DNA from: Paraphysomonas bandaiensis
Taxonomy: Eukaryota; Protista; Chrysophyceae
NCBI GenBank assembly: GCA_965644295.1
Contig: CBFFRP010000143.1
Coordinates: 124,001 to 188,000, forward strand
DNA: 64,000 bases
Direction: 5' to 3'
Shown here piece by piece: positions 10,367 to 41,381 of this stretch. Positions within the stretch are counted from its first letter, which is position 1. Each line of letters opens with the position of its first letter. Both the position numbers and the translations under genes were made by a program. The notes below the pieces were generated by a model. That model was given only the letters and a program-made list of their open reading frames with translations. It made no database searches and had not been told where the DNA came from.

Positions 10367-12958
10367 CTAGGGAAAATCAACACCGGTGCGAACGCAATAT
10401 TTCGCCGAATCTTCAATTGAGCAAGGAATCCACGTCGCAACATCTCTCACCAGAGCCATCATGGTACCTCTACCTTTTGTGACAAACAATTTTCGAATAT
10501 CCTCAGTCATCCACCGCTCAGAATTCATTGAAAGAAAAACGACAGGACTTTCTTTGTAGGCTTGCAATGCAGAGAGATAAGCAGTTCGAATTCTGAAAAG
10601 TCTTTGTATTTTAAATTCGGACTTCATATGTTCGTATATTCCAGTCTGTGCGAAAGTGTATACTTCAGGTGCAATGTTCCTGGCCACAACTGCCAGCCTG
10701 AACCACTTTCGCGTCATCCATGGATAAACCTCCGCAAATTTCATATAGTCCACCCAGTCTAAATAACCAGCGCCATAATTTGATGCCTTGAAGTTTAATC
10801 TTTCTTTGTCCGTAATTCTCTTCCCCGATAGCACAGCTTCTCGCTGAGTGTTTGACAGGTATTGAGTACCTGGACTTAGCGTGACCATCACATTACTGAG
10901 AGTGATGCTTGTATCATTCTTATGCTGTGCAACAACGACTCGCTTGTCTGCACGATCCGAATGACTCGACACAATGAACGCAGTGTCAGCACCCATGCGC
11001 TTGGGCAGATTAGTTAGAATGACAGTATCATCCACGGTCCCGTCATCTCTAACAAACCGTCGAAAAGCACATTCTCTTTTGATATCAGAGCAGTCCACAA
11101 CTCGACATGCAAAGCAAGAAAATTGATCTACCAGTTCTGGAAGTAGATGACGATCCGCTGTGAACATTGGTATGACAAGGTCAGCGAAGTCTATCCCATT
11201 CCCATTGTGCATGACCTGGTGCTGGTAAGTAAGCAATGCGATGTTATAAGCGAAAGCAATTTCAGCCACATCGCCTTTTCCAACACACAGTTTCGTCTCA
11301 ATCAGGAGCTTCAGCACATCATGGATTCCAGTTTGTAACTCTTGTAAAATAACTGATTTAAGCACGTGACCGACCAAGGGCTCTGCATAAATATCAATTT
11401 CTTGTTCATTGTGGATGTTCCTGTTCTGATGATCTGCACATGCTGGCACCAAACTCGTTGCAATCGCCTCTCCGATTCCAAGCTGGTCGCTTAACACCAT
11501 TTTGCCGTTATCAAAGAGCAGTGCCTTGACGAGATAGGGTAGAAAGTATCGAGATGTCTTGCTCTGATCAAGAGGGAATGCTTTTCCGCCTTCCAGAACA
11601 TTGCTCATGCGGACGCTGAACTCACTGCACAAGTCACTGACTCCTCTGTTCATAACACTGAGAAGGCAAGACTCAGAAATCGAACCAGAGAAATTATACG
11701 ATTCACATTCATGGTAAAGAGGGACAAATACCCCATTCACAAATAGGAGGGGCCTCCCTTCACAAAATTTCAGAGCCTTCCGCACTTCTTCATTTTCCAG
11801 CACACTGTCTGCGATGTTCCAGTAGTGCTTGAGGGTGGACACCATTTGTTGAAGTGAAAACAGTGCTCGTGGCGCCACTATCTTAACATTCCCTCTGACA
11901 GGGGAGTAATCGTGGGCTGTTTTGCGAAACTTTGTCATCGAGAAGGATGTTCCAGTCATGTACATGTACCACTCACACTCTTTTGCCAGTTCACACATAG
12001 CACAACACAGCACATAAAAGATCCCACGTGAATGTTGGTGGCGCTCCTTGGTTGAAATTGGAGGCAACTCAAAAACATCCTGAGACCTCTGTCCAGTAGT
12101 GCAAACCGGATCGTCAAGGTCACTCTTCATTTCATCATTTTTTTGACTGAGGTACTGTTGTTGTGACAAGAAAAGCTCAGAATATTTATCAAACAAAGTT
12201 TGAATTTCATCGAAACAAAGTAAACATGGAATATCTATAGTAGAGCTTAATTTGACTTCCGCATAAAAATTATCCATTGCATCCGAGTTAATTACAATCA
12301 ATCTAGTTTCCTCATCCGTAATTTGCATCTCAGCAATGCGTGCATTGAAGTAGTTCGATGTCAGCGCTTCACCCCGGACATTGCGGTGAAAACGTAAAGC
12401 CAGTTCACATTTTTTGCATATGTTCACATCATCTGTCGTATCTCCAATAGCAATATGTGTCACATGCACATAACATAGGATTAGCAATTTGATGTATCTG
12501 TATGCATGATTGGCAATTTTGGACTTGTCACAATTTGCAGCAGTTTTACGATACTTTTCAAAACGATCCAATTGTTCAAACAAAGCAATCCATGGTGTAG
12601 AAAATGCAGCCTTCCCATTTTCTTCTCTTTGTTGGGCGATTCGAATTATAATTGATATACATGACCCTGTCAGTCCCGCTGCATATGCAAGATGGGTTTT
12701 ACCGACACCTGATGCAGCAGAAGCGCAGAATAAGGACATTGCTTCTTGGGACTCGATTTTCCTAAAATAATTAGTAAAAATGTTGCAATCGTGGCCAACA
12801 GTTTTCATTAATTGAGGAATCAATATTTTTCTATTTGAGGAACTCCTATCCACAGGCAGTGGGTTATTCATCCAGTCCGGCAACACCTCCGCTGAATTAA
12901 AATCTTTTTGAACAATATCACGAGAATATTGTGTGATGGCAGAAATGATATTTTCCAT
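10367..12958 (-). CDS. Crinkler/RHS-type P-loop NTPase + C-terminal restriction-endonuclease-like domain, 863 aa, intronless
   Basis: Walker A SAASGVGKT, Walker B LLCFDEIQ, downstream TGTS and GRP motifs; C-terminal GDVAE...LPKRMGADTAF...VVVAQHK fits E..PD..QxK nuclease spacing. Confidence 0.75.
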   Translation of the reverse strand: MENIISAITQYSRDIVQKDFNSAEVLPDWMNNPLPVDRSSSNRKILIPQLMKTVGHDCNIFTNYFRKIESQEAMSLFCASAASGVGKTHLAYAAGLTGSCISIIIRIAQQREENGKAAFSTPWIALFEQLDRFEKYRKTAANCDKSKIANHAYRYIKLLILCYVHVTHIAIGDTTDDVNICKKCELALRFHRNVRGEALTSNYFNARIAEMQITDEETRLIVINSDAMDNFYAEVKLSSTIDIPCLLCFDEIQTLFDKYSELFLSQQQYLSQKNDEMKSDLDDPVCTTGQRSQDVFELPPISTKERHQHSRGIFYVLCCAMCELAKECEWYMYMTGTSFSMTKFRKTAHDYSPVRGNVKIVAPRALFSLQQMVSTLKHYWNIADSVLENEEVRKALKFCEGRPLLFVNGVFVPLYHECESYNFSGSISESCLLSVMNRGVSDLCSEFSVRMSNVLEGGKAFPLDQSKTSRYFLPYLVKALLFDNGKMVLSDQLGIGEAIATSLVPACADHQNRNIHNEQEIDIYAEPLVGHVLKSVILQELQTGIHDVLKLLIETKLCVGKGDVAEIAFAYNIALLTYQHQVMHNGNGIDFADLVIPMFTADRHLLPELVDQFSCFACRVVDCSDIKRECAFRRFVRDDGTVDDTVILTNLPKRMGADTAFIVSSHSDRADKRVVVAQHKNDTSITLSNVMVTLSPGTQYLSNTQREAVLSGKRITDKERLNFKASNYGAGYLDWVDYMKFAEVYPWMTRKWFRLAVVARNIAPEVYTFAQTGIYEHMKSEFKIQRLFRIRTAYLSALQAYKESPVVFLSMNSERWMTEDIRKLFVTKGRGTMMALVRDVATWIPCSIEDSAKYCVRTGVDFP

Positions 12959-13937
12959 GGTTAAATATTATTTACAAACTATTTGAAATTTGTTATTAGT
13001 AGAAGCGGCCATTTCCCGTGTAGTTAGATCGAATTCGCAGTGAAAGTGTATATATTTGTATTTCATTTGATAAAACAAGTATATAAGCCCGCCGTGGACA
13101 CATACAGTCGTCTTTGACTTACATCAGTGAATATAAGTTCCGATTCGGAGTCACAATCAGACCACTGAGACGTCTCACACAACAGGAACTCCAGCTGCCG
13201 CTTTGTCTTGAAAAGACGCCTTATAGTTACTATCTCTTTGGTACAGAGGCCGTAACACCTTTTCCCATGGCTCATATACTTAATCTTCTGTCTTTGCTTG
13301 AGAGAAGTTGGGTTGCCGAGTGCACCCATCGTGGGCGCATTTTTTGCCATGATAAAAATATACGGTTCTGTACACACAATCATTTTTAGCTGGTTGTGTG
13401 GGTATACTTTACCGCCAAGAAAACGTTTTTCGACACAGCGTATTTTTTTCGTATGTGGTACTGTATTGGGGAATCATGATGCTCCACAGCTTCGTAGTTG
13501 TATGCTGGTATGAGATAGCTATATGCTGTAGTCCTGTAACTAATACAATGTGAGTCCAATCATCAGCACCTTGTATTGGCCTTTTTTCCCAGAGATTGAG
13601 ACTTTTCATTTTGAAAAATATCTAATTTCTGGCACAGATATATTGATTATTCGTTTTGTATATGAAAATATCTCTGATTTATATATTTTTAACAAACCCG
13701 ACATGAAAGCACAGAATATCGAATTGAATTGCTATAATTGGCTATGACGTGAAGTGAGATAATAACTACAGAGCAGTGAAGTGTAATCGCAGTATGCGGG
13801 TATGTATATATGTACATGCATGTACATGTGTATATGTAAGAGCGTGAGAGCCGGGGTTTATATTTAACTGTGCTGTTCATTACTGTTAGTGGAGCTGTAC
13901 GAATTGACACTCGAGGCAATGTATTGCACTCATTCGA

Positions 13938-16900
13938 ATGGATAAAGAACGGCCACCGTTACTCCTCAAGAGCGAGATGAGTGTGGATTATATATTCGGA
14001 TACGGCAGCATCATTAACGATGAGTCCAGGTCAAGCACTATGGGATGTGATGCTGCTTTATTGAATTCTCGTAGTGGGTCCTCTGTGCAGCATGGAGAAG
14101 GGGGGAATTTGCATGGGGATCTGTCGGTGGCGGCCTGTGTGAGTAAAGAATTCGCATATCGTAGCTGGAATTTTCGTAGTCCCACTGGGTTCACGGCACT
14201 GGGCTTGGTTCTGAGTGATAATCAAGGCCCTGAGCCACCAACAACTAACATTCAACAGACTACCGAAGAGTTCTGCGGAGTCAACGGAGTTTTATTCCCT
14301 GTTCCTTCTGAGCATTTGAGAGCATTTGATGTCCGCGAAGTTGGCTACTATCGGGTGTCTGTGCCACTGAGCATGATTATCATCCTCAGCAAGTGCGGGT
14401 GTCCGGCAGCTCGTGAAAGAGCACTGGCCCTTGAGGAAACGCTTAGGTTTCATTGTCTCAGTCCTGAGTCTGCTCGGAGGGATGACAGCCAGCCCCATCA
14501 TTTAAGGGTGTGGGCTTACATACCCGACAGTACTCATACTGCGGCCCCAAGCGAGGACTTCCCCATCCTGCAGACCTACTTGGATGTTTGCATTCGTGGG
14601 TGCCTTCAATGGGGCGGAGAACCTTTGGCCAAGCACTTTCTGCTGTCAACAACAGGTTGGAGCGACTGTTTTTTAAACGACGCACCTCTTAGTCGACGCC
14701 CGTGGCTACATCGGACAGACTACCGCGAGGTAGATGCTTGTTTGCTAGGGTGCGCGGAACATGTCAAGTTTTCATGTCGTTGCCACCCAGAAGAGTTTGC
14801 CTCTCTCCATAGCTCGTCCTTAAAGGCGGGTCAGTGGGGACTGCCCACGCGTAATCCACTCTTTACTGGCAGGGAGGATTTTCTACGTACTCTTCATTCC
14901 CGGTTAGCTGAAAATCGCGGGCCTGATTTCTCCGGGGGGGTGCGACAAGTTGAGGTGGTGGGTCTAGGAGGCGTCGGCAAGAGCCAGATCAGCGTGGAGT
15001 ATGCACATCGACAGTACTCTGCCGGCTATTATGGGTTTGTGGCATATGTGAGGGCGGAATCCAGTGCATCGGTAGCCACGGATCTAAGGCGATTAGCTTT
15101 TGATCTTGGTATTTTGCGTTCTGGGGGAAAAAACTCTGATGGCCTCAAGGAGGGAGAGTTCGACGTCAGCTGTGACGATGAAACAATTGCGGAAGAAGTA
15201 AAGAGGCGCCTATATCGATGCAGATATAAATGGCTACTTATATTTGATAATGTTGACGACCCTAAAGTAGTTTCAAGCTGCCTTCCGAGGGGTGTTGAAG
15301 GGGCGAGACATGGAGGTGGACATGTTTTGATTACTAGTCGAGTTCTCCATCGAGAGTGGCTCGCGAGGGGTTCCGCTCTCAGTCTGCAATGCTTCCAGGA
15401 GGAAGAAAGTGTTGCCTTCTTAAGGGCTGCATTTAATGTGTCTCAAGCAGGAAGCAATGTGGATGGTGAATCGGCGAGCAATGTGCGGGATTTGGATTCA
15501 CTGCGGGATCTAGCAAGACGGGTGGGACACCTTCCACTTGCTCTTTGGACTGCAGGTGTGTACATGACGAGGTGTGATGTCTCGGCCGTAGAGTATATGT
15601 TTCGGTTGGACACCTTAGTTAACAGAGCCCAGGTTGACGAGAGTAGCAGTGAGATTGCGGGTACAATATCATCTTGCTTTAGCATGACTCTGGACAGAAT
15701 CTGTGTCGAGAGCAGCACTGCGCAGGCAGTGCTTCCGTGCATCGGTTTTCTTGCTCCTGACATTTCAAAGAGAATGATCCGACTCCTGATTAGTAATTCG
15801 AGAGCAAATGTGCTGAAGCCTCTGGCAACACAATCAAATGATATTCATGCATTGGTTGATCATCGCACTGAGTCGATGAAAGTTTCCTATGACAAAGAGC
15901 CGCTCAGGATTGCGATGAAAGACTTGTACGACTCGTTTGTGCTATTTTCTTTTCTGACGATAGTAATTTGCTGTATTTTGGGCCAGTTTATTTGTGATCA
16001 GCTGAATCAGAGAGATATTGCCCTTGTGTTACTGGCAGTATTTGTCGGATCATATGTCACAGTACTCAGTTTGGTTATCACCTTGCAATTGCGAATCGGG
16101 TTCTTGACCTACTCCAGGGAACAGTATCTACATGTCGAGTCAGTGTTGACCACGTATAATCTACCTGAACATGTGTCTTTCAATGGTATGGGAGGGAATC
16201 ATGACCTTCCGTTGGTAAAAGAGAGGGAATTTAGTGATTCTCTCTTGCAGGTTGAGAGTGACAAATTGTGGGAAGTGATGCGAGACTTTTCGCTTTTGTC
16301 TGAAGTGCGTGGACCAGTAAGTGAGAGTCGTGTAGGCACAGTGCACAGACTTCAACTAGCTGTATTGCGTCAACGAGCTCGTCATAGCAATTGTGTCGGC
16401 CCTTGCATAGAAATTTGTATAAGCATGCTGGCCTCCCTCTGGGAATTTAACCCTTCCGACTTCTCAAGTTGGGATACAGCTGGGGATTTGGTCGAACACA
16501 TCGAGGCCTTGTCTAAACATGTTAGTGGAGAGTTTTCGTTTTCTCAACCCAGCTCTGATGAGCATCGTAGAGAGAGTCTCTTAACACTTTCTCGCTTGCT
16601 GACGGGCGCAGGAGAGTTCTCTGCGGTTGTACTGTCCCGCTTCGACAGTGCACAGCAGATGCTGGAGTCCGCTTATGCGTTGCAAAAGCAGCTGATCGAA
16701 CTGGAAAATCGTGAGGATGAATACCGAAATGATGTTCTGCTACAACGTGTTGCTGATACGCTGCATATTCTCGGCAAGACATTACGATATAATGGCCGAC
16801 TTCATGACTCGGAACACAGTTTGAAGAGCGCCTTAGACTTACGGCGAAAATATGCGTCCAACTTCGTTGAAGACCTTGGGGAATCGGGATTAAAAGTCGC

Positions 16901-18455
16901 AGACACACTTCATGAGTTAGGAGTACTTCATCTTCGCATGCATAGTCTCACGACGGCGAAGTCTTTCTTGAGTTTGTCGTTGGATATGAAGTGCGAGTTG
17001 CGATATGAAATGAACTGTACTCTTAGTGATGACCAGAAGTGTGATAACGCGCGACAGAGTGGTACGCATGCGGAGCGATATACTAGTTTCAGAAGCGGTG
17101 AAGCTGCTACACTGCACCAGCTCGGTGTTATTGCCACGCTTGAAAGAAGATACGACGACGCAGAGTCTTACTTAATGGAAGCACTTAAAATGATGGACGG
17201 TCATGATATTGCTGATGGAAGAAGCAGCAGAAGTATCAGTCGTGCAGCTACGTTGCATCAACTTGGCAAAGTTGAACTCAGAAGGGGAAACTTGTTCCAG
17301 GCCCAGGAACAGCTTCTACAGGCACTAGACTTATATCAGAAGGCGTATGGAGAGCGACGGGCCGCATCACATGTTAACGTGGCGGCAGTGCATCATCAAC
17401 TGGGTGCCACTGCTCTCGCTGCGCGCGATTTCGACACTGCATGTCACCATTTCTCCGTTGCATTAGCTGCACGTGAATTAATACTATCTGAGAGCTCAGG
17501 AGGCAGAACTGGATTGTGTCTCGCACTACAAGCACTTGGGCAAGCAGAAATTCAGAACAAAAACCTGGATAGAGCTGAAACATTATTTCTGCGTGCACGA
17601 TCAGAAATCGAAATTGAGCTACAAGCTGTAGAGAGTGTGGAGCCTACTGATACAACAGTGGAATATTCGCTAAACAAGCTCATTCCATGTGGGGATAAGG
17701 AAGACACTGGGGACTTTTCGTTGATGGGGGGGGAATCGGTGTTGTTCTCCTCTCAAAAGAATAATTTGATAAAAAGCTTAGTCTTTTGCATTCATTACCT
17801 CAAGATGATTGCTAAGCAAACTGGTGATCACGCTTGTGCAGAGTTGTACAGTAAGGAAATCCGAGAATTGAAAAATAGAGACACGAAAGGGAGAAAAGCA
17901 GGAAGAAACTTCGTGAGCAGGGTATCAGATGATTCGGATAAAAAAGAAAGTCACATTCATAAAGACCTCTCGTCTGGCGAAGTAACGGTGATGACAGGAG
18001 CCGGACTAAATCTTGACAAGGATTGCATAGTGCTCCTGAGACACACTCTTGCTATTCGGAATAGCGTGAGAAAGTCGTGCTCTGAGTTTAGAAAAAGCAT
18101 AAAAGTGAAAAATGTTAATACGGGAAATGTGTGTTCTGCCGATAACAATCTGACTAAAGAATCATGTGGCGTATGTGCGGAATTTAGTAAATTGGTATGT
18201 GCAGTTCGTCATGAAATCACGGTTAGCCAAATTCATCTTGGCAACGCAAGCATTAGTATGGAACGCTCCAGAATACCCACCTCCTACTTAGATAAAGTTA
18301 TTGATGTATACGAGCACTTTATATGTGACCTCGAACATGCAACAGATGTTGGTGGTTGCCAGCTGTCAATGAAGTGCTGTTCTGCACTTTTTAATGCATG
18401 TGATGTTGTCAGGGCTCGCCTCGGAGAATTTGGAATAAGTATAGAGGATTCCTAG
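13938..18455 (+). CDS. NLR-like STAND protein: GGCT (ChaC/AIG2-like) domain + NB-ARC + 2 TM helices + ~7 TPRs, 1505 aa, intronless
   Basis: GGCT: YIFGYGSIIN, RSW, VNGVLF, FDVREVGY. NB-ARC: PTRNPLFTGRE, GLGGVGKS, WLLIFDNVDD, VLITSR, GHLPLAL, VHRL. TPRs: repeated A(D/A)TLH(Q/E)LG...A......AL. Confidence 0.9.
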   Translation: MDKERPPLLLKSEMSVDYIFGYGSIINDESRSSTMGCDAALLNSRSGSSVQHGEGGNLHGDLSVAACVSKEFAYRSWNFRSPTGFTALGLVLSDNQGPEPPTTNIQQTTEEFCGVNGVLFPVPSEHLRAFDVREVGYYRVSVPLSMIIILSKCGCPAARERALALEETLRFHCLSPESARRDDSQPHHLRVWAYIPDSTHTAAPSEDFPILQTYLDVCIRGCLQWGGEPLAKHFLLSTTGWSDCFLNDAPLSRRPWLHRTDYREVDACLLGCAEHVKFSCRCHPEEFASLHSSSLKAGQWGLPTRNPLFTGREDFLRTLHSRLAENRGPDFSGGVRQVEVVGLGGVGKSQISVEYAHRQYSAGYYGFVAYVRAESSASVATDLRRLAFDLGILRSGGKNSDGLKEGEFDVSCDDETIAEEVKRRLYRCRYKWLLIFDNVDDPKVVSSCLPRGVEGARHGGGHVLITSRVLHREWLARGSALSLQCFQEEESVAFLRAAFNVSQAGSNVDGESASNVRDLDSLRDLARRVGHLPLALWTAGVYMTRCDVSAVEYMFRLDTLVNRAQVDESSSEIAGTISSCFSMTLDRICVESSTAQAVLPCIGFLAPDISKRMIRLLISNSRANVLKPLATQSNDIHALVDHRTESMKVSYDKEPLRIAMKDLYDSFVLFSFLTIVICCILGQFICDQLNQRDIALVLLAVFVGSYVTVLSLVITLQLRIGFLTYSREQYLHVESVLTTYNLPEHVSFNGMGGNHDLPLVKEREFSDSLLQVESDKLWEVMRDFSLLSEVRGPVSESRVGTVHRLQLAVLRQRARHSNCVGPCIEICISMLASLWEFNPSDFSSWDTAGDLVEHIEALSKHVSGEFSFSQPSSDEHRRESLLTLSRLLTGAGEFSAVVLSRFDSAQQMLESAYALQKQLIELENREDEYRNDVLLQRVADTLHILGKTLRYNGRLHDSEHSLKSALDLRRKYASNFVEDLGESGLKVADTLHELGVLHLRMHSLTTAKSFLSLSLDMKCELRYEMNCTLSDDQKCDNARQSGTHAERYTSFRSGEAATLHQLGVIATLERRYDDAESYLMEALKMMDGHDIADGRSSRSISRAATLHQLGKVELRRGNLFQAQEQLLQALDLYQKAYGERRAASHVNVAAVHHQLGATALAARDFDTACHHFSVALAARELILSESSGGRTGLCLALQALGQAEIQNKNLDRAETLFLRARSEIEIELQAVESVEPTDTTVEYSLNKLIPCGDKEDTGDFSLMGGESVLFSSQKNNLIKSLVFCIHYLKMIAKQTGDHACAELYSKEIRELKNRDTKGRKAGRNFVSRVSDDSDKKESHIHKDLSSGEVTVMTGAGLNLDKDCIVLLRHTLAIRNSVRKSCSEFRKSIKVKNVNTGNVCSADNNLTKESCGVCAEFSKLVCAVRHEITVSQIHLGNASISMERSRIPTSYLDKVIDVYEHFICDLEHATDVGGCQLSMKCCSALFNACDVVRARLGEFGISIEDS

Positions 18456-18989
18456 GGGAATAGGTGTGTTTAGTTTAAAATATATCAGCTCATTACGAAC
18501 GCTTCAGTATAAGATTATGAGTATTATGTACACATAAAATAAGTATATATTTTGTAAATTTGTTTTTATGAAATATTTTCTGACAAAGGAATATTATTTA
18601 GGTGTTACTTCTTATATATGTGAATGTGTGTGCTATTTTAATGTATGCACTACATTTGCTAAATATATGTACAGCCACTTAATATAGAGTGGTAATAACA
18701 AATAACGGTGTCATTTTTATACTACTAAATTTTCCAATTGTTCCTAACAAACTAAAATATATCATTTGTTCTACTAAAGGTTGCAGATGTTTCTACTAAC
18801 CTAAAACCTAAATACCAGTTGAGCCATATAGAAATTTAAGAGAAGACTCTAGGTAGTCGCTTGTGTGGTACATGTCGCTTGTGTATACGTCTTTGGGCTT
18901 TGACAAATAATCAGGCACCCGGAAATGGGCCCACCTCAAGGGTATCCGGGGTATTGGGCTGCCTGCTGAAGGTAAACATCCGGGATGTT

Positions 18990-22122: not shown

Positions 22123-25100
22123 TCAAAGACCCGCGTCGTCAAGCAATGAAGCAGCATCGGTCATACTTTTCTTGGCTTTTGCTTTTCTGGCGACAGTAGA
22201 TTTCGGCATCGTTTGTCCAATAGTATCACTCTTGCGCTGTTTCTTTAACTTTGAAATTTCAGATTGCATTTGTCCAATCATATTTTCAGCAGACTCCAGT
22301 TGAGTCTGGAGTCGAACTACTTCTACTGAGGAATCAGACCCGGTGTTTTTTTGTTGCCTTTCAAACGAAACATCGGCGAATTCAATGTCAGTATCAATTT
22401 CTTCCTTTATCTCCTTTGGTTTGATGCAAAATAATGGAACTGTTGGAAAGAATGCCACCCAAAGTTCAGTGAAAAGCACCCAGAAGAAATATCCCAGAGA
22501 CACTGCTACAATAAAAATAACCAAATATGCCAACGAATCCCGCTGAGTGCCTGTGAGCTCATCGCTCTCAAACATAATAGCAGCTGAATAGAAAAGAGTA
22601 AAAGGTTATTCAAACAATTTGGAACAAGTACTTACATATAGCAACCATTATAGCCGAAAAAAGCAAGTAAGACTCCACCGTGTTGTAATTATTGAAAAAA
22701 TCTAATTCCGGGGCTTTTAGCTCAAACATAGGACCGATATTTCCTAAACGGTTGACATTAATTTTGGTACCTCGCTTTTGTGAAGTGCTCTCTCTTGTAT
22801 GCATCGAAATGACATCAGCATATTTCTCCGCAATATCGGCATATTCAGATGTCGACATATACGGTTTATAATTAACTTGCGCGGTGTATGACGTAAACAG
22901 AACAAGGAGATACAAGGCAAGCAAAAACACAGTGTTCTCTCGAAACACCACTGCAGCTACCGATAAGCAGAACTTCCTGATCAGGATACAAAAGATCCAG
23001 TAATAATATTCAGGTTTAAATTGATAAAAGAGGCGATTGTAAATTGCCTTAAATCGTGTGAGTTTTTGTTTTTCAAAATCTCCACCTTCAACTTTCCCAG
23101 CAGCTTTCATAACTTGAGCGTACACGCACTTGTCACTATTCGTATGCAAGACGAATGCTACGAATGCGGGAAAGCCGATTGTGTAAACTATGAAGGCAAT
23201 TATAGCCCATGGTTCTAACTCTTGCTGTATGGTACCCTCCCTATAACACCTTCCACCGTCAGGACCGATTTCAGCCATGTACTTATACCCATCAGGAGGA
23301 TCTGTTGGTTGGCAGTTAAAAATAGCCAGCGTGTTGTTAGAAAGCATCAAGTATCCATAGTAAAATAGCATTAAATACACAGCAATACATTTGTAAAGCA
23401 TTTCTGTCTGGTTTCCTTTCGCAGATCTGAATATTCTCATGTATGCATAATAGCACAAGAATACAATAGCAATAATTAAAAGTGCGATGAGCGGAGAGAC
23501 TGTGATACCAATCCACTTCTTTTTAAATGACACAGAAACTGCATTCCAACAGTCAGGCGCCGCGACGTCAATGTTGAGATTAAATATAGAAAATGAGTTG
23601 TACATATTTACCAGGCTTGGAGGCCAGCTGACGTCAGCCGTACCAAACACAGCTAACACCTGGAAATAATCTATACCGATAGATAAAATACCAAGATTAA
23701 CATTCTTGGCCTGAAGCTTGTAAGCAATATACCCTCCGCATATCAGCACCAAAATACCCGCCAACACTATGGCCCATGGCGCTGTGGGACACTCTTGGCA
23801 CTTTCCATTGATGCGATAGTAACCTTCGTTACACTCGGCACACCTGTCACCAGTGTACTCCTCAGAGCACGTATTATTTCCTTCACACGCGCTGGAAGGC
23901 ATGCACGGTAAAACTGCAGGACACGTCTCTCTTGAAGAGGTGGCTTCAGGGCACTGTCCACTCGGGGATTGCAGAAAGCTTAGATACCATCCATGGTGGG
24001 CTGTCGGGGAGTACATATTGTCTTGATCACATACATATCCAGTGACCTCACTCTCTCCACAATCAGTACAGTATTCTCCAGGTCCACCAAAAGCGCCTTT
24101 CTTACAGGTCACAGTGTATCGATCATTTGGTAACGACGCTTGATATGCCACATGTACCGTCACATTTAGGGTCCCGACAATGGTGCTTGGTGTTGTACAC
24201 TTCAAGTACGGATCATAATTGTAGACAGCATCATCAGCAAGCCAGACGCTATCTAGGCACGGAACACCGCCAATGGAGATATTGAGAGGAGTTCTAAAAG
24301 CACCAAAGTTTTCACCGTACAATTTCAAGGTTTCATCACCAATAGCATCTCCTCCATTAGACTGGTAGAAGAAGTTTATTACAGGGTTACTGTAAGAAAA
24401 GTTCGAATATGTTACTTGCCCATCAACGGAAAAAGAAATCACAAGGTCTTTACCAGCACCTTTCGGAACTGTACACTTGGCTACAGTGTGGGTCTGTGAC
24501 ACAACAGGACATAGCGTTGGTCCCATTCGCTCAAAGTTATTTGCCATCACACTGTCCACGCCAAATGATGAGACAGACGAGTCGTACAATGGATCTTGAA
24601 TATACACTGTAAGCCCACTTGTACCAAACGACATTCCATTGAATGTCATTGTGTAACCGCCTTTAGTATTGATATCATCTGGGAACTCCATGCTCAAAAT
24701 TTTTGGTGGATTATAGCTGAAAAGATATGGCCCTCCAGTATGAATTTGTCCACCAACTGTCAGTGCCACGGTTAGGTTTTGTCCTTGTCCAGCAGGAGGA
24801 TAGAACTGAATTTCTGTGCCGTTAAAAAATACAATATCCTCCATGGGAACGGAATACTCTCCAATCTTAAGCTCCCAATCCAAGTCCACATAGCCAAAAT
24901 TTCGACCACGCAGTACGACAATGACATTAGAATCACGCCCGCCTGACGTATCACAGTTTAATGGCCACACATTGGAAATAGAAGGAGGAATATAAGCGAA
25001 CATATCCGGAGATTCGCCGATTTGATTGCTCACATTAACAGTCAACATCAAGTCCTTGCCTTGACCAGGTGGAATGTAAAAAGTGAGGCGATTGTGTGTA

Positions 25101-28100
25101 AATGATTTCACGTCGATTTTAACATCGCCTAGCATAACAGTAGGGCCTTGAATCCCGAAATTATCACCAGTCACATTGATTGGGCTAGCGGACCCCGCAG
25201 TACCTACCTCCAAGGTAGAAATGTATTCATCGATAGATGGTGCAAGATACGAGAAATACTTCTCGGTGCTCCCTGAATTATCCTGGTTTCCTACCTGAAC
25301 AACTGCGAGCTTTTGACTCCCTTCATTTGCAACAGACAACAGCTCAACGTATGTGTGATTAGATGCGTTTACATTGACGGGCCACGGCACTCCACCAATG
25401 GTAACAGTCCTACTCAACCCGAAGTTTGACCCCAGAAGAGCAACTTTATACCCACCATTTGTAATACCAGTGGACGGAACAATGGAAGAAATTGTCGGAG
25501 GGAGGTAACTAAGGCATGAAGCAGTGGTACAAAGTTCACAGCCACAGCCCAGCGAATATGAGAGACCTTTCACAACTCTCAAAGAATTGTACGACCCTTG
25601 ACCCGCTGGGAGCTTGCAGTAAACTTCCTGAAAATCAACATCAGGATCGTATCCTGTGCCAGCCAATGTCGCTGCCATCGCTGACCACTCAGAAGGCGAC
25701 TCGGTTTTACTCACACCGTTGTAAACTGTGACGTCGCACTCAGCTTCAGTTTCAGAGTCACTGTTCTCCACATTGACAATAAATTCCCCTTCGCTGCCGA
25801 AGTTTTGTCCAACAATGTATATTTGGACTGGGTTCGACAAGGTGTATCCACTGGTCATAGCAGTTCCATATTTGAATGACGACTTTAGCACAAGCGGCTC
25901 GCCGAATTCATAGTACATCATATTTGACGTGGCTACGTTAGTACTTACTGTCACATTTCCACCACGAACACTAATATCACATATAATCTGTGCGTGAGAC
26001 TTATAGTAGCAGTACGGAACAACTGGTGTAGGAGAATCAACAGGATATATTGTAACAACTGGTTTTAGAGAAAACGAGCTTCCCCCAATACTTAATATGA
26101 CGGAATTATTGCCAGAATCGACTGTATTGAGTGTATTCACTTTGGGAGGCATGTAAGAAAAATAGACAACATTGCTAAGTTGTCCGCCAACGTCGACATA
26201 TATTCCGTACCTTTCCTGTGAAACGGTTGTCGCCACAGGGGAAAAAAATACCAGTTCATCTTCCCCATTCGCAAATACATTAACTCGTTTAGTGGCAAAG
26301 TAAACTTTTGGTGTCGTGTCAACTGCAAAATTTTCCCCGAATACAGATATTGTTTGGGTACCATCTGTGGAAGCGGTGTTCGGATCAATTGACGTAATTT
26401 TCGGGCGCGCATAACTGCTGGTCTGGTCAGACAGACCAGACGACTGACCAGCAACAGTAACTTGCCAATATAAACTGCCACCAACACCAGCAACAGTGTA
26501 GCATTGTATTTCAGAGTTGGACAAAACTTCACACTCAGCTGCAGTGTATTCGGTTCCCGACGGACCGTATGTAACTTGCTCCAAGAATTCTTTTCCATAC
26601 AGCGCGACAGCATTTGGTGGACCAAAATTTTGTCCAGTCAAAATAACTAAGTCACCACCATCTACAGAAGCATTGACCACACCGGACCCAGCAAGAGACA
26701 TAATTTTCGGTGCACCGTAGGACGTTGTAGGTGACACTGAAAGTTGCCCGTCCACCACAACACTCCATACAAGACGACTACCAGCACCTGGTAGGGTTCT
26801 GCAATACAAAGTTTTGTGCGGTGTATACATGGAACAATTTTCAGTGGCCACAAAAACAGTACCATTGAACTCAGTATAAAAGACCATATCCACATTGTCA
26901 AACGTTGGCCCAAAGTTGCTGCCATACACCAACACCGTCTGGTTACCACTCGTTAATGCATCGACTGAGCCACTGCCAGAGAAGCTCGCCACAGTAGGTG
27001 GATCATATGAGGAATTTGTCGACAGCAGAGGAGACGACTGCCCTCCAATGCTCGCAATGAACTTGAGGTTGGTTCCCGTTCCAGGAGCTGTCAAGCATTT
27101 TAACTTTGTACTCGCCGTTATTACCTCGCACTCCACCGCAGTAAATTCCACCCCTGTTTTACCATAAGTGACAACGATATCATCCTCATCCACAGAAACA
27201 GGGCCAAACTCGCTTCCAGATAAATAGAAGATATCCCCGCCTTCAGTCGAAGCAGAGGACGCACCAGCGCCAGATATGCCATCTAACTGGGGGGGCTTAT
27301 ACTTGACGAATGAGGAAAAAGTCATGCTCGATTGGTCAGCAACCGTAACTATAAATTTGAGATCTCTACCAATACCTGGGGCAGAAAAACATGACAGTTC
27401 TGCATGAGCTCTTTCTAGGGTGCACGACGCAGTGTACTCCAGTCCTGTTTCAGCTCCATATGTCACTTTCAACACAGTGATCTCATCTCCAAAGTTTGTA
27501 CCAGTTATATTAATGCTGTCGCCACCCATGGTATCCATATCCTCAGCAATCACTGACATAATATGGGGCCGAGCGTAAGAACTTTCTCCAGAGAGAATAT
27601 TCGAATCCTGCCCACCGACAATCAGCTTCCAATCAAGTGAGCTACCATAACCATCTGAACTTATGCATTCCACAGAGACGTGAGCAGCTACAACGGTACA
27701 GCTGACATCTTCAGAGATATACGAATTACTCTGTTCGCCCTCGACAATATTATAAGTATCACCAGCATTACCGAAATTAGATCCCTCTATAGCAACAACA
27801 GCACCGCCGCTGGTAGATAAATTATGAGCATTAGTTAAATTAGATAACTGGGGAGGAGCATATGCAAGAGTAGCAGTTGAAAAGGGAGTAGTACACGACT
27901 TAATTCCAGCCGCCCCGCCATAATCAGTGGTAATAGTCAGCACCACCCCGAGGTTTGTACTAATTCCTGCAGGCAAGGTGCAGTTCACTTGGGTATTTTC
28001 ATGAACATCGGTACGATGAACATCACATGCCATAGCAAACATATAGGTAGCTAGACTTGACGATGCACTGGACTGTAAACTCCCTGTAACAGTGGTATCG

Positions 28101-31100
28101 GACACTGTCATCCCACTCGATTGCATCCTGGCTGTTGTGGGGCCAAAGTTGCGACCTGTGATAAACAGCTGCATCCCACCGGACGTCGGTGCTGAGTTAA
28201 CAACAGCTCCACTGATATCAGCAATCGAGGTTACAGTGCAGTCTGGGATATCAGAAATATATATCGTTACAATACAGGTACTAGTCAGCCCAGTTGAATC
28301 CTTTACTTTAACATTAAGAGTGTGAGATGCGGCATTCTCAAAATCTATTCCGGTAGACGATATTCTTATGGCGCCTGTGTTGGCATCAACAGAAAGAGAA
28401 CCAGACGTCGTACTGTCAACAGTGTATCGCAGTCCACAAAAATCCTGACATACTTCGCCATTGTCAAAATTTACAACATCTTCAAAATCAGGGTCGGTGA
28501 CTTGAATATATCCTATTTCCGAACTTACAACATTCTCAGCAACAGTTATACTGGACGGTGATGCCACAGGGGCCTCATTTTTATTAGCAATGTTGATGGT
28601 GACAGTGGCTGACTTAAAAACTGACCTGCTTGACCACGAGACATCGTAAATGTACTGGGATTGAACTTCAAAGTTCAAAGAAAAACCTGATTTGAGACTC
28701 AAAATACCTGTGGTAGAATTAATTGCAATTGGATCACTGCCACAAACGACACATATCAGTGAGAACAGCCCATTCTGATCAGCCGGATCTTCATCAATTA
28801 CAACAACTGGATTTACGTACACATTGTTCGAAATCAGTCTACCACTGACAATATTCTCATCAGCTGTAAACGTTTGGTTATTTAATATCGTCGGCTCATT
28901 GACGTCTGTAACTGTGATCTGAACTGGACACGTAACCGATTGGGGTGCCACAGAGTCTTCCTTTGCCTGCACTGAGAGAGAATAGGATATAACACTCTCG
29001 TAGTTAAGTGCACTCGCCGTAGTGGTTAGCACACAGCCGGGGGCAATAGCAAACTTTCCTGCACTATTACCTGAAGTTATCGTACAGATCAAGCCTGTAC
29101 CGGAATCATCCGTAATGGTAGTTGCCTGATCTGATCCAGAAAGAGTAGCAATTTCTTCCCCCTCCACTGTGTTTTCGAGAACTGCGAAACTGAAAGGTGT
29201 TGTGGGACATTTGGGAGGAAAATTGACATCAGTAATTGTCAGAGAGACATTTGCAATGTCATATAATCCTCCTCCATCCACAACTCTAACAAGTATAGAG
29301 TGAATAACATCACCAGGTAACCAAGAAGTGTTGGCGTTAGATGTTAGATAAAGTGTACCTATATCATTGACATATGATACAGCAAGCCCACTTACAGGTT
29401 CGACAAGTGAGTAGTTCAGATTGCCCCAAACACCATATGTATCAACATCCGAAGCTATAATAGAACATATTTCAGTTCCGGACGCAGCATTTTCAGCAAC
29501 GTAGCAGTCAATCGAAGAATCAACCACTGGAGCATCATTTTCATCAGCAACGTCTATAGTAACATACGTAGTTCGATTGAAGACGCCGTCAGTAACTTGA
29601 AGAAGCACTGAATATGAGTTCTTAATTTCATAGTCAAACTGCTCCTCTGTATACAACGACATACTCGTTCTACTCTCCGGTACAACTTGGAACATTGAAG
29701 CACTCGACACATCGCCATCCACGGAAATAACAGTGAAATTAAGTGCATCATCGTCATCGTCAGTTGCACTATACTCCAGCGCCTGCCCAGCGTTGACCAC
29801 GTAAGCCCCAGCTACAAGATTTTCAGATACTTCGCCAGTAAGATACGTGTCAAATACTGGGGCCTCAGGGACATCATTGACAGAAATCAACACAGTCGAT
29901 GACGCGAAAAGGCCTCCATTATCAGTTACCTTGACAGTGTAAGTGAAGGATGGTGTTGCCTCAAAGTTCAAGTAAGTCTGTGCTAGATAGAGCTGACCGC
30001 TTGTAGAGTTGATTCCAAAAGTTTTCGCACCATCAGAACCATAATTGCTAATTGAAAAAATGGCGGTACTTCCTTCATCCGGATCAGAGTACTCAGCACG
30101 TAGCATCGTTCCTAGATTAGTGTTCTGTGGTGAGTTCTCATCCATTGAAAAACTCATCGAAGCAGTGATAACTGGGGGCTCATTAACATCAGTTACTTTT
30201 ACAACGAAAAGCCCACTATCTGTTAGGGGAGGCGACCCGTTATCTGTAGCCGTAACTTCCAAATTGTACTGCGCCAGGCGTTCATAATTTATGCTCGCAT
30301 TGAGAACAGTGAAGTAGTACGATGTCAAGCCAGTGGACGCACTATACTCCGACTCTAATGTAAAAACATTGTCAGTATTCCCTCCTGTTATGTCTAACGA
30401 CACGCTTTGTCCAATATCAACATCTGTTGCATAAATTCCAATCCCAGTACGCGATCCATTTACAGAATTTTCATCTATAGAGGAAAACGTGCCAGATGAC
30501 TCTACTAATGACGGGTTTTCATTTACATCGTTCAAGTTAATAACGTACGCTGCAGAAGACATCAAACCCCCTTTGTCAGTAACAGATATAATCAAAGTAT
30601 AAGAGTTCACAGACTCAAAATTAAGACCAGAATTCGCAACGATGATAGTTCCAGCCGAAGGATCAGAGAGAGAAAACATTCCAGCAGAATTACCCGATTC
30701 TATTTGATATACCTTTTCACAACAAAAGGTGAAAGAAGAAGACGGATCAGCTTCATCTGGATCAGTGGTGTACATCGTAAGATTTTCAATAACTACCAAC
30801 CCTTGATTAGAATTTTCATCAACAGAAAATGTTCGCGATTCCATTGAAGGGTATTCGTTCACATTAACCAGATATATAACGACCTGTGAATATGACAGTC
30901 CACCATTGGACTGAACCTGTACAGTGAAATTGTATAAAGAGAAAGACTCATAATCCAAAGTACCATTGACAAGAATAACACCCGAACAGGACTGAATATC
31001 AAAGGCCCCGTTATAATTACCGTTGCTTCCTTGGTCCGATATTATAGCATATGCAAGCTCTGAATTGTCTGCAGTGGAGGCCGGGACTTGACAAAAAGCA

Positions 31101-39238: not shown

Positions 39239-41381
<2,143 letters not shown>

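Follow-up and report, generated by a model that had tools for sequence, protein, structure and literature searches.

In the marine flagellate Paraphysomonas bandaiensis, a chrysophyte, we found a gene that joins an enzyme domain of the gamma-glutamyl cyclotransferase (GGCT) fold, a type of enzyme that destroys glutathione, an NB-ARC switch and a TPR region in one uninterrupted 1505-codon ORF (13938-18455, + strand, stop included; all coordinates refer to the window, i.e., the whole 64,000-nucleotide stretch of DNA that was analysed). The gene is intronless, and its product is ordered as GGCT-like domain, NB-ARC (carrying an inserted hairpin), TPRs and tail. Our best explanation, to which we give a probability of roughly 0.45, is a membrane-tethered STAND switch that gates the enzyme, with glutathione depletion leading to a redox stress response or death. 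The fusion is apparently unstudied: we came across no STAND protein with a GGCT effector in the papers searched, in line with a preliminary description of this DNA that did not know the fusion as a characterised system, and two large STAND surveys (PMC13581612, PMC7159879) make no mention of GGCT, ChaC or glutathione.

Contigs from two sequencing runs, X1 (13839-18558) and X2 (13773-18500), each span the ORF with 0 differences and 0 gaps and end just beyond it, and pieces of polyA marine metatranscriptomes also fall within it. These contigs are transcript-like and transcript-bounded, covering the gene end to end from enzyme through tail, and the gene gives rise to a single expressed protein. 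The uninterrupted ORF of the preliminary description, along with the single transcript it proposed to look for, was thereby borne out, with 1505 residues free of internal stops and each motif found where it had been placed. An origin of the ORF by chimeric assembly, or by read-through of two neighbouring genes, a reading for which we found no supporting point, is hardly credible: the gap-free contigs come from independent runs and stop just outside the ORF, and the identical architecture recurs in 68 homologues from many samples, contradicting a chimera. At the 5' end, an 8-codon uORF in another frame (13919-13945, +) overlaps the first ATG, and M14 (13977) offers an alternative start in agreement with the N-termini of homologues, which begin M-x-Y-I-F-G-Y-G-S; on these two grounds, the first 13 codons may be untranslated.

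By fold and profile evidence, residues 15-300 (13980-14837, +) form a GGCT-fold enzyme domain, with a beta-barrel core (15-200) that carries three variable long loop insertions, followed by a conserved helical extension of about 110 residues (~200-300). The best 18 Foldseek matches of its AF2 model (pLDDT 87.8) are all GGCT-fold proteins, and VIA Z-scores reach 11.5 for human GGCT (2rbh), 10.7 for YkqA, 10.3 for yeast ChaC (5hwk) and 10.2 for ChaC2; in the ESM Atlas, its neighbours are clusters of bacterial gamma-glutamylcyclotransferases (TM 0.63-0.73). Using hhalign, the catalytic motifs also align with those of the canonical ChaC that is encoded separately, elsewhere in the same genome (95.5% probability, E 1.6e-8). 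Specifically, YIFGYGS (13989-14009, +), the YGS(L) motif that binds the substrate carboxylate in GGCT-fold enzymes (PMC7022552), pairs with YIFGYGS of the canonical ChaC, and FDVREVGY (14325-14348, +) pairs with its LDFREKGGY. The latter stretch contains E134 (14337-14339) and Y137, whose equivalents are Glu83/Tyr87 of ChaC2, Glu98 of GGCT and Glu116 of yeast ChaC (PMC7022552), making E134 the predicted catalytic acid/base Glu. E134, Y137, Y214 and D216 do not vary among the sequences compared (199/199), while G23 and S24 of the YGS motif are invariant in alignment A1 and near-invariant in the 199. With its catalytic residues retained, the domain is apparently an active enzyme. Foldseek, VIA Z, ESM Atlas, hhalign and the profile NF049903 thus agree on the GGCT fold that had been guessed from motifs, and the catalytic Glu said to be kept is indeed unchanged among the relatives.

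The further label of ChaC-like did not gain support, as there is no Pfam ChaC (PF04752) match in the domain. It is instead a GGCT-fold family of its own, whose nearest named model is that of Francisella ChaC (NF049903, FTN_0599_fam_GGCT; E 6e-10, but 39 bits vs. a 480-bit cut-off). The likeness includes part of the C-terminal extension, in that positions 170-206 of the FTN_0599 model match a family-specific block, recognised by homologue comparison (PILQTYLDVCIRGCL ... SRRPWLHR; 14562-14714, +), in which Y214, D216, R254 and W256 are invariant. FTN_0599, the closest characterised and sole genetically characterised relative of the enzyme domain, is a membrane-associated GGCT-fold protein that is implicated in glutathione catabolism and that a ggt mutant needs in order to grow on GSH (PMC7340319). 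It differs, however, in standing alone as a periplasmic enzyme held by an N-terminal anchor; the GGCT domain here is joined to a cytosolic-type ATP switch. With canonical ChaC, ChaC1 and ChaC2 (PF04752), human GGCT and RipAY, the domain has in common the fold, the YGS motif and the catalytic Glu, but it differs in its three loop insertions and helical extension.

We draw the link to glutathione from this nearest named model, from the role of FTN_0599 in GSH use, and from the precedents of ChaC1 and the Ralstonia effector RipAY, which indicate that glutathione destruction can drive cell death or suppress immunity (PMC7340319). Against glutathione depletion we count the failure to match Pfam ChaC and the low score relative to the FTN_0599 cut-off, and against our best explanation as a whole the canonical ChaC already present in the genome. 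The sequence of a GGCT-fold enzyme does not, to our knowledge, reveal its substrate specificity. The switch might operate as described on an enzyme whose substrate is not glutathione—candidates being gamma-glutamyl amines, epsilon-(gamma-glutamyl)lysine cross-links, other gamma-glutamyl peptides or a protein N-terminus—or whose product (5-oxoproline or a dipeptide) is the signal. GGCT, GGACT, ChaC and AIG2-like proteins vary widely in substrate (PMC7022552, PMC7340319), some relatives of the domain match GGACT weakly, and the conserved extension with its four invariant residues has no characterised counterpart, all of which, like the absent Pfam match, speak for such a substrate. We nonetheless regard it as distinctly improbable, given that FTN_0599 is tied to GSH use and that the GSH-specific yeast ChaC is, with human ChaC2, among the nearest structural matches (Z ~10).

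The enzyme domain is also the most conserved part of the protein (identity 0.55-0.65, vs. 0.3-0.5 for the NOD and TPRs). Plant NLRs are known to carry integrated decoys, and on that general precedent the GGCT domain could be a decoy or non-catalytic sensor that baits pathogen factors aimed at glutathione-degrading enzymes, leaving another part of the protein to signal. This idea, raised in the preliminary description, we consider very unlikely, because the putative decoy is the best-conserved domain and retains E134, Y137, Y214 and D216 throughout, with all catalytic-site residues tested being invariant in 70 fused-clade sequences. It moreover occupies the N-terminal effector position in 68/68 long homologues, and Pfam and other profile searches found no second candidate effector domain in the protein.

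The NB-ARC module comprises residues 302-630 plus 781-812, split by a hairpin inserted in the winged helix. Its first part (14841-15827, +), delimited by profile and fold matches, includes the NBD, helical domain 1 and the first half of the winged helix, and carries, as sequence motifs on the + strand, Walker A GLGGVGKS (14961-14984), Walker B WLLIFDNVDD (15231-15260), sensor-1 HVLITSR (15321-15341) and a GLPL-type GHLPLAL (15525-15545). The second half of the winged helix (16278-16373, +), assigned from conservation and from a model in which a beta-hairpin and helices are placed at high pLDDT, contains the MHD-equivalent VHRLQ (16341-16355). The NB-ARC motif residues are invariant in alignment A2, with H803 and R804 (H506 and R507 of that alignment) invariant in 31 sequences. 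Residues 302-615 match NF040586 (FxSxx_TPR) with E 1e-50 (173 bits, below the 300-bit equivalog cut-off), and Pfam NB-ARC scores 23.1 bits against the protein, just below its cut-off of 23.5. Foldseek with the NB-ARC AF2 model (pLDDT 80) returned the NRC1 NB-ARC (E 2.6e-10, TMt 0.73), NRC2, Apaf-1 and CED-4. The complete NB-ARC motif set claimed earlier is therefore present in all its motifs, but interrupted by the hairpin (667-716) ahead of the MHD-like motif.

This hairpin (15936-16085, +), predicted from hydrophobicity and the model, consists of two strongly hydrophobic helices, at residues 667-686 and 694-716, and a short polar loop between them, with Kyte-Doolittle means of up to 2.6 over 19 residues and disordered linkers on either side; in the model, the helical hairpin occupies residues 654-686 and 691-737. 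It is conserved by position and not in its own sequence: at least one hydrophobic segment occurs in 47/54 non-redundant long family members, and at least two in 31/54, located 230-520 residues past Walker A. Judging from this hydrophobicity, the protein is probably membrane-anchored through the hairpin. The hairpin is absent from the preliminary description.

C-terminal to the switch, residues ~885-1230 (16590-17627, +) form the putative TPR sensor region, where Pfam matches (residues ~918-1178; four TPR_12 stretches with E 2.4e-16, TPR_2, TPR_10 and TPR_1, as well as a weak TPR_NPHP3) and repeat-like conservation fit roughly 7-8 repeats of TPR_12/TPR_10 type, consistent with the ~7 noted previously at ~16590-17600. 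Mean identity to 30 homologues in this region is 0.25-0.49, and the TPRs are conserved about as well as the NOD. The remaining 275 residues (17628-18452, +) form a tail without recognisable domain, poorly conserved except for its last 35 residues.

Taken as a membrane-tethered switch gating the enzyme, the protein would be anchored by its hairpin with both halves cytosolic. At rest, the TPRs would keep the ADP-bound NOD closed and the enzyme inactive or sequestered. Binding of a conserved ligand to the TPRs, be it a danger or stress signal from the cell itself or a conserved molecule of microbes or viruses, would allow nucleotides to be exchanged and the protein to oligomerise in the manner of Apaf-1, plant NLRs and Avs (assumed from these other STAND proteins), clustering or unmasking the N-terminal enzyme domains. 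These would then act on glutathione, or on a related gamma-glutamyl compound, and cut its gamma-glutamyl bond to give 5-oxoproline and Cys-Gly, such that the local or cellular thiol buffer falls and a redox stress response or cell death follows. Such gated glutathione loss would parallel NAD+ depletion by TIR or SIR2 effectors, as well as glutathione destruction by mammalian ChaC1 and RipAY.

The combination of GGCT, NB-ARC and TPR is a recurrent architecture, with the same layout in 68/68 long relatives examined and YGS ~300 residues ahead of Walker A. The fused GGCT domains form one clade (support 0.93), apart from stand-alone bacterial enzymes, which have ordinary metabolic neighbourhoods. 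Members of this fusion clade come from the chrysophytes Paraphysomonas and Mallomonas and also include metagenomic relatives, some of which, at least, are eukaryotic; eukaryotic genes surround the fusion in 2/2 relatives whose neighbourhoods were read. In P. bandaiensis the gene is single-copy, without close paralogue, and PADLOC returned no matches.

Several of these observations would also fit a housekeeping or metabolic regulator, in which the STAND-TPR part tunes a gamma-glutamyl cyclotransferase at the membrane on a metabolite or redox cue (e.g., for sulfur/cysteine recycling or organelle glutathione homeostasis), much like metabolite-responsive STANDs of the MalT or AfsR type. Single copy, orthologue-like conservation extending to the TPRs, metabolic neighbourhoods of the bacterial relatives and the PADLOC result all favour such a regulator, as do the matches of the NOD to AfsR, its best sequence hit in the PDB, and, by fold, to MalT among others. 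We judge it unlikely, though to be taken seriously: a canonical cytosolic ChaC is already available for turnover, an N-terminal enzymatic effector on NB-ARC is by structural matches the layout of death and immune STANDs, and ATP-gated oligomerisation, if all-or-none as we infer, would be ill-suited to fine homeostatic tuning. AfsR and the NB-ARC-TPR proteins of FxSxx-COOH systems (NF040586) are the nearest sequence relatives of the NOD, but these lack the hairpin, and AfsR has a DNA-binding SARP domain in place of an enzyme.

Of the earlier proposal of a glutathione-depleting immune or death receptor, the layout in one expressed protein and the retained catalytic residues stood, while the immune role did not gain support. 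The order of effector, STAND and TPR is that of fungal NB-ARC-TPR NLRs, brown-algal NB-ARC-TPR candidates (PMC3341825) and bacterial Avs, whose enzymatic N-terminal effectors, placed as in the fusion, work after oligomerisation. Those families, however, are expanded, variable or located in defence islands, in contrast to the single-copy gene with conserved TPRs and no PADLOC match described here; nor was a STAND fusion gene found beside relatives of the head-to-head neighbour gene at the two loci checked. As none of these features resembles a diversifying immune receptor, it is only by analogy that a death or immune outcome is proposed. With Apaf-1, CED-4 and plant NLRs, the protein has in common the NBD, helical domain, winged helix, Walker A, Walker B, sensor-1 Arg, GLPL and MHD-like His, along with an N-terminal effector and C-terminal repeats, but it carries a GGCT-fold enzyme rather than CARD, CC or TIR, TPRs rather than WD40 or LRR, and a winged helix split by a hydrophobic hairpin. 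A single copy and conservation are further features that it shares with Apaf-1, and this single copy, together with the conserved TPRs, argues for an Apaf-1-like conserved switch over a diversifying immune receptor.

The GGCT-STAND gene occupies one unbroken 1505-codon frame at 13938-18455 (+) of the window, on contig C143 of an assembly of 62.6 Mb and 669 contigs. Direct reading of the frame bore out the single uninterrupted ORF reported in a preliminary description of this DNA, and the motif positions listed there all proved correct (YIFGYGS at 13989-14009, FDVREVGY at 14325-14348 and the Walker A motif GLGGVGKS at 14961-14984). A check for a single transcript also came out in its favor, as lone contigs from each of two runs that share a coded organism label with the best-matching runs span 13839-18558 and 13773-18500 and cover all domains of the ORF with 0 differences and 0 gaps to the window. 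Both contigs, from which strand and exact transcript ends are not provable, stop just beyond the ORF and leave the upstream intergenic DNA without coverage. This is what one unspliced mRNA across all domains would look like, and gap-free, gene-bounded coverage of this kind argues against a chimera. Pieces from polyA marine metatranscriptomes (≥99% identical) are likewise confined to the inside of the gene. M14 (13977), the second in-frame methionine, lines up with the N-termini of homologues, and the real start of the protein may therefore be M14. We also noted an 8-codon uORF at 13919-13945, in another frame, that overlaps the annotated ATG (13938).

The N-terminal domain was recognized solely via NCBIfam, profile-profile comparison and fold comparison. 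Pfam gave no match for residues 1-300 even at E ≤ 10, and PDB searches by phmmer and by profile gave none for the N-terminal domain. As PF04752 (ChaC) was also absent from residues 1-300 in the Pfam search, the ChaC affinity suggested in the preliminary description does not extend to membership of the Pfam ChaC family. The NCBIfam model of the FTN_0599-type GGCT (NF049903, the Francisella ChaC type) matched residues 191-227 only, at 39 bits and E 6e-10 against a curated cut-off of 480 bits, and we accordingly read the domain, from sequence comparison, as a relative of the FTN_0599-type ChaC family and not a member of it. Stand-alone relatives of the domain scored up to 68 bits (E 6e-19) against the same model and matched Pfam GGACT weakly; their NCBI and JGI names are "gamma-glutamylcyclotransferase family protein" or "ChaC", and the enzyme-domain family as a whole is large, with at least 1000 cluster representatives at E ≤ 1e-3. 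The true ChaC of the genome lies elsewhere (PF04752, 119 bits), at 39415-39990 of assembly contig C90. It sits inside a 607-aa open frame, far longer than a typical ChaC, which may hold additional domains or represent unspliced sequence.

Comparison of predicted structures placed the N-terminal domain within the GGCT fold, as the preliminary description had proposed. An AlphaFold (AF2) model built from 41 family members reached a pLDDT of 87.8 and a pTM of 0.86, and in a Foldseek search of the PDB its best 18 matches were all GGCT-fold proteins with a probability of 1.00. VIA-align superposed the model on human GGCT with a Z of 11.5 and an rmsd of 3.4 Å over 152 of the 169 residues of the human protein, with further matches to YkqA (Z 10.7), yeast ChaC (10.3) and human ChaC2 (10.2) (best chains ~8-11), while the nearest ESM Atlas models were bacterial gamma-glutamylcyclotransferase clusters whose match takes in the C-terminal extension as well (TM 0.63-0.73). 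Profile-profile alignment with the genome's canonical ChaC gave a probability of 95.5% (E 1.6e-8) over a partial stretch of 95 columns, pairing FGYGS (F20-S24, within YIFGYGS) with FGYGS of ChaC and REVGY with its REKGGY. Beyond the shared fold, variable loops occur at three places in the domain, which also carries a conserved helical extension of 110 residues (PILQTYLDVC..GCL, SRRPWLHR).

The catalytic site of this fold is defined by the YGS motif and a glutamate (Glu83 in ChaC2, Glu98 in GGCT, Glu116 in yeast ChaC; PMC7022552). The YGS(L) motif of the superfamily is present, with G23 and S24 invariant in the alignment of enzyme-domain relatives, and the catalytic acid/base glutamate is found as E134 within REVGY. 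E134, Y137, Y214 and D216 are identical in 199/199 full-length domain sequences (70 fusions, 75 bacterial and 54 other). Together, fold, profile and residue evidence thus identify the N-terminal domain as an enzyme of the GGCT fold whose catalytic site is intact and which is predicted to be active. The same observations bear on the integrated decoy that had been put forward as an alternative, in which the GGCT domain would serve as bait: with the enzyme in the effector position and its catalytic site invariant, a decoy fits poorly and we regard it as highly improbable.

Downstream of the enzyme, the NB-ARC/STAND motifs GLGGVGKS, WLLIFDNVDD, HVLITSR, GHLPLAL and VHRLQ (MHD-like, 16341-16355) occur in order, which agrees with the complete motif set described earlier, and their core residues are invariant in an alignment of 31 sequences of this switch module (NOD). 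Although the Pfam NB-ARC score is marginal (23.1 bits vs. a cut-off of 23.5), both a family model and the predicted fold support the assignment: the NB-ARC part of NCBIfam NF040586 (FxSxx-system TPR protein) matched at 1e-50, and a model of residues 298-830 (pLDDT 80) retrieved with Foldseek the NB-ARC of tomato NRC1 (E 2.6e-10, TM 0.73 by target), NRC2, Apaf-1 and CED-4. In a PDB sequence search with the NOD, the best match was the Streptomyces regulator AfsR. Pfam TPR_12, TPR_10, TPR_2 and TPR_1 repeats follow at residues ~918-1178, and no domain was recognizable in the last 275 residues of the protein.

The winged helix of the switch is split, with its first half running to about residue 630, followed by a disordered linker, hydrophobic helices at residues 667-686 and 694-716 (Kyte-Doolittle means up to 2.6), a second linker, and the remaining half, which holds an invariant His-Arg pair (H803-R804) in the NOD alignment. 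The sequence of this hairpin is not conserved, but its presence and position are: at least one hydrophobic segment lies 230-520 residues past Walker A in 47 of 54 non-redundant long relatives, and two in 31 of the 54. From its sequence, the hairpin is predicted to be a membrane anchor that would leave both halves of the protein on one side.

The same architecture recurs among relatives, whose public annotation is "TPR repeat protein", with a YGS motif about 300 residues ahead of Walker A in all 68 of the 68 long relatives retrieved. One named fused member comes from Mallomonas annulata, another alga of the chrysophyte lineage, and two metagenomic members sit among eukaryotic genes (eIF-1A, light-harvesting protein, TMEM18, protein kinases). 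Maximum-likelihood analysis of 199 domains put the fused forms in one clade of 91 (support 0.93), a count that includes ~21 short or partial gene calls with no detectable NOD. This clade is apart from other short forms and from a stand-alone proteobacterial clade (Acetobacteraceae, Paraburkholderia, Caballeronia, Methylobacterium, Inquilinus; support 0.99). The topology agrees with a fusion that arose once, in a tree that is midpoint-rooted, a rooting that does not establish the direction of events.

We found no bacterial STAND fusion of a GGCT-like domain among the loci inspected, nor among four long bacterial ORFs with such a domain that were checked for it, one of which may be joined to an alpha/beta hydrolase. 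An alphaproteobacterial MAG carries a GGCT-like domain and a C-terminal alpha/beta-hydrolase domain in one 927-aa frame (L058:4782-7565, +), which could represent another kind of fusion or an artefact of read-through in high-GC DNA. In a "Candidatus Berkiella" MAG (an amoeba-associated bacterium), a stand-alone GGCT-like gene adjoins a 454-aa U-box protein (L062:4334-6633); the U-box, a eukaryote-like E3 ligase domain, is typical of effectors that are secreted. The bacterial neighborhoods of stand-alone relatives had no common theme (PTS, permease and dehydrogenase genes; an S1/P1 nuclease; U-box and ABC genes), and no substrate was inferred from context. That the enzyme acts on a substrate other than glutathione seems to us quite unlikely.

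An immune-receptor role, as suggested in the preliminary description, agreed less well with the data. The enzyme domain is single-copy in the 62.6-Mb genome, which has only ~9 NB-ARC-like matches in all and no close NOD paralogue, the next NOD being 31% identical in the P-loop region only. Across 30 homologues, identity is 0.55-0.65 in the core blocks of the enzyme, the best conserved part, and 0.25-0.49 in the TPRs, similar to the NOD; the lineage-specific expansion and fast-diverging sensor of an immune receptor are thus not seen. Neither defence-island context nor a conserved partner or shared neighbor was found in the two loci checked, and PADLOC returned 0 families at E ≤ 0.01 for the whole protein, its N-terminus and the neighboring gene, hence no match to models of the bacterial Avs antiviral STAND proteins or other defence systems. 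Single copy number, conserved TPRs, and the lack of a PADLOC match or partner therefore speak against a diversifying NLR repertoire. The protein looks more like Apaf-1, also conserved and single-copy, that is, a STAND protein that would sense a conserved signal.

Our main reading, to which we assign a probability of roughly 45%, is by analogy a ligand-gated, membrane-tethered switch whose enzyme would break down glutathione, or a gamma-glutamyl compound related to it, and thereby trigger a stress response or death. The resting protein would be membrane-tethered, ADP-bound and held shut by its TPRs; a conserved ligand would open it, allowing nucleotide exchange and oligomerization; the N-terminal enzymes would then be clustered or unmasked and cleave their substrate; and the redox stress so caused would end in a stress response or in the death of the cell. 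Precedents are the mammalian ChaC1, a pro-apoptotic, glutathione-specific enzyme, the Ralstonia effector RipAY, which breaks down host glutathione, and the closest characterized relative, the Francisella ChaC, which supports growth on glutathione without GGT (PMC7340319). A non-lethal regulatory or metabolic role is a less likely alternative; since the genome has a separate canonical ChaC, the GGCT-STAND enzyme is suggested to be dispensable for ordinary glutathione turnover. A bolder reading, a eukaryotic membrane-anchored NLR/Apaf-1-like death switch whose effector would destroy glutathione and in this way kill or arrest the cell, is in our estimate rather unlikely.

In animals, plants, fungi and bacteria alike, innate immunity and apoptosis are built on the common chassis of STAND/NLR proteins, in which the N-terminal effector sets what each protein does, and depletion of NAD+, ATP or dNTPs is among their metabolite-depletion strategies in immunity and cell death. 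If the death-switch reading were true, "thiol-buffer depletion" would join this list, acting in heterotrophic as well as photosynthetic marine protists, in which regulated cell death is ecologically important and its mechanism obscure. More generally, a glutathione-type cyclotransferase that is conserved and apparently active would, in the effector position, amount to a new class of effector, made still more unusual by a predicted membrane hairpin within the winged helix. It would offer a molecular handle on stress and death signaling in chrysophytes and other marine protists, about which, to our knowledge, almost nothing is known except metacaspases. Even as a metabolic regulator, the protein would be one of few eukaryotic STAND ATPases that gate an enzyme of small-molecule metabolism. 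Literature searches that paired GGCT, ChaC or AIG2 with STAND, NLR, NB-ARC or antiphage terms turned up no account of such a fusion (with most subscription journals outside the search), and neither cyclotransferases nor glutathione is mentioned in two broad surveys that deal with STAND conflict systems (PMC13581612, PMC7159879). An immune-receptor role has been suggested for NB-ARC-TPR genes of brown algae, but no GGCT-type effector is described for them (PMC3341825).

Several further genes were noted in the course of this analysis. Head-to-head with the GGCT-STAND gene lies an 863-aa intronless ORF (window 10367-12958, -) that contains LLCFDE and P-loop-like (GVGKT) motifs, had no match in Pfam or PADLOC and shares 99% identity with an MMETSP1103 transcript (taxon 36769) from Paraphysomonas, a colorless phagotrophic chrysophyte. 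Its metagenomic relatives (838-1017 aa, 26-33% identity) were considered as a conserved partner and set aside, as those in the two loci checked (L088 and L089) are not beside a GGCT-STAND gene. On the contig of one GGCT-STAND homologue (P0033), a 955-aa protein without a Pfam match lies head-to-head upstream, an arrangement resembling that of the window, and 3 kb downstream, on the opposite strand, there is a further TPR_12 protein of 1514 aa. Elsewhere in the Paraphysomonas assembly, contig C71 encodes a 1280-aa NB-ARC-TPR protein (L094:1006-4848, -) with strong TPR_12 and MalT-TPR matches, a weak PX match (residues 534-607) and no detectable sequence similarity to the GGCT-STAND enzyme domain. 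Finally, the window also holds an unbroken 3521-aa ORF at 22610-33175 (-).
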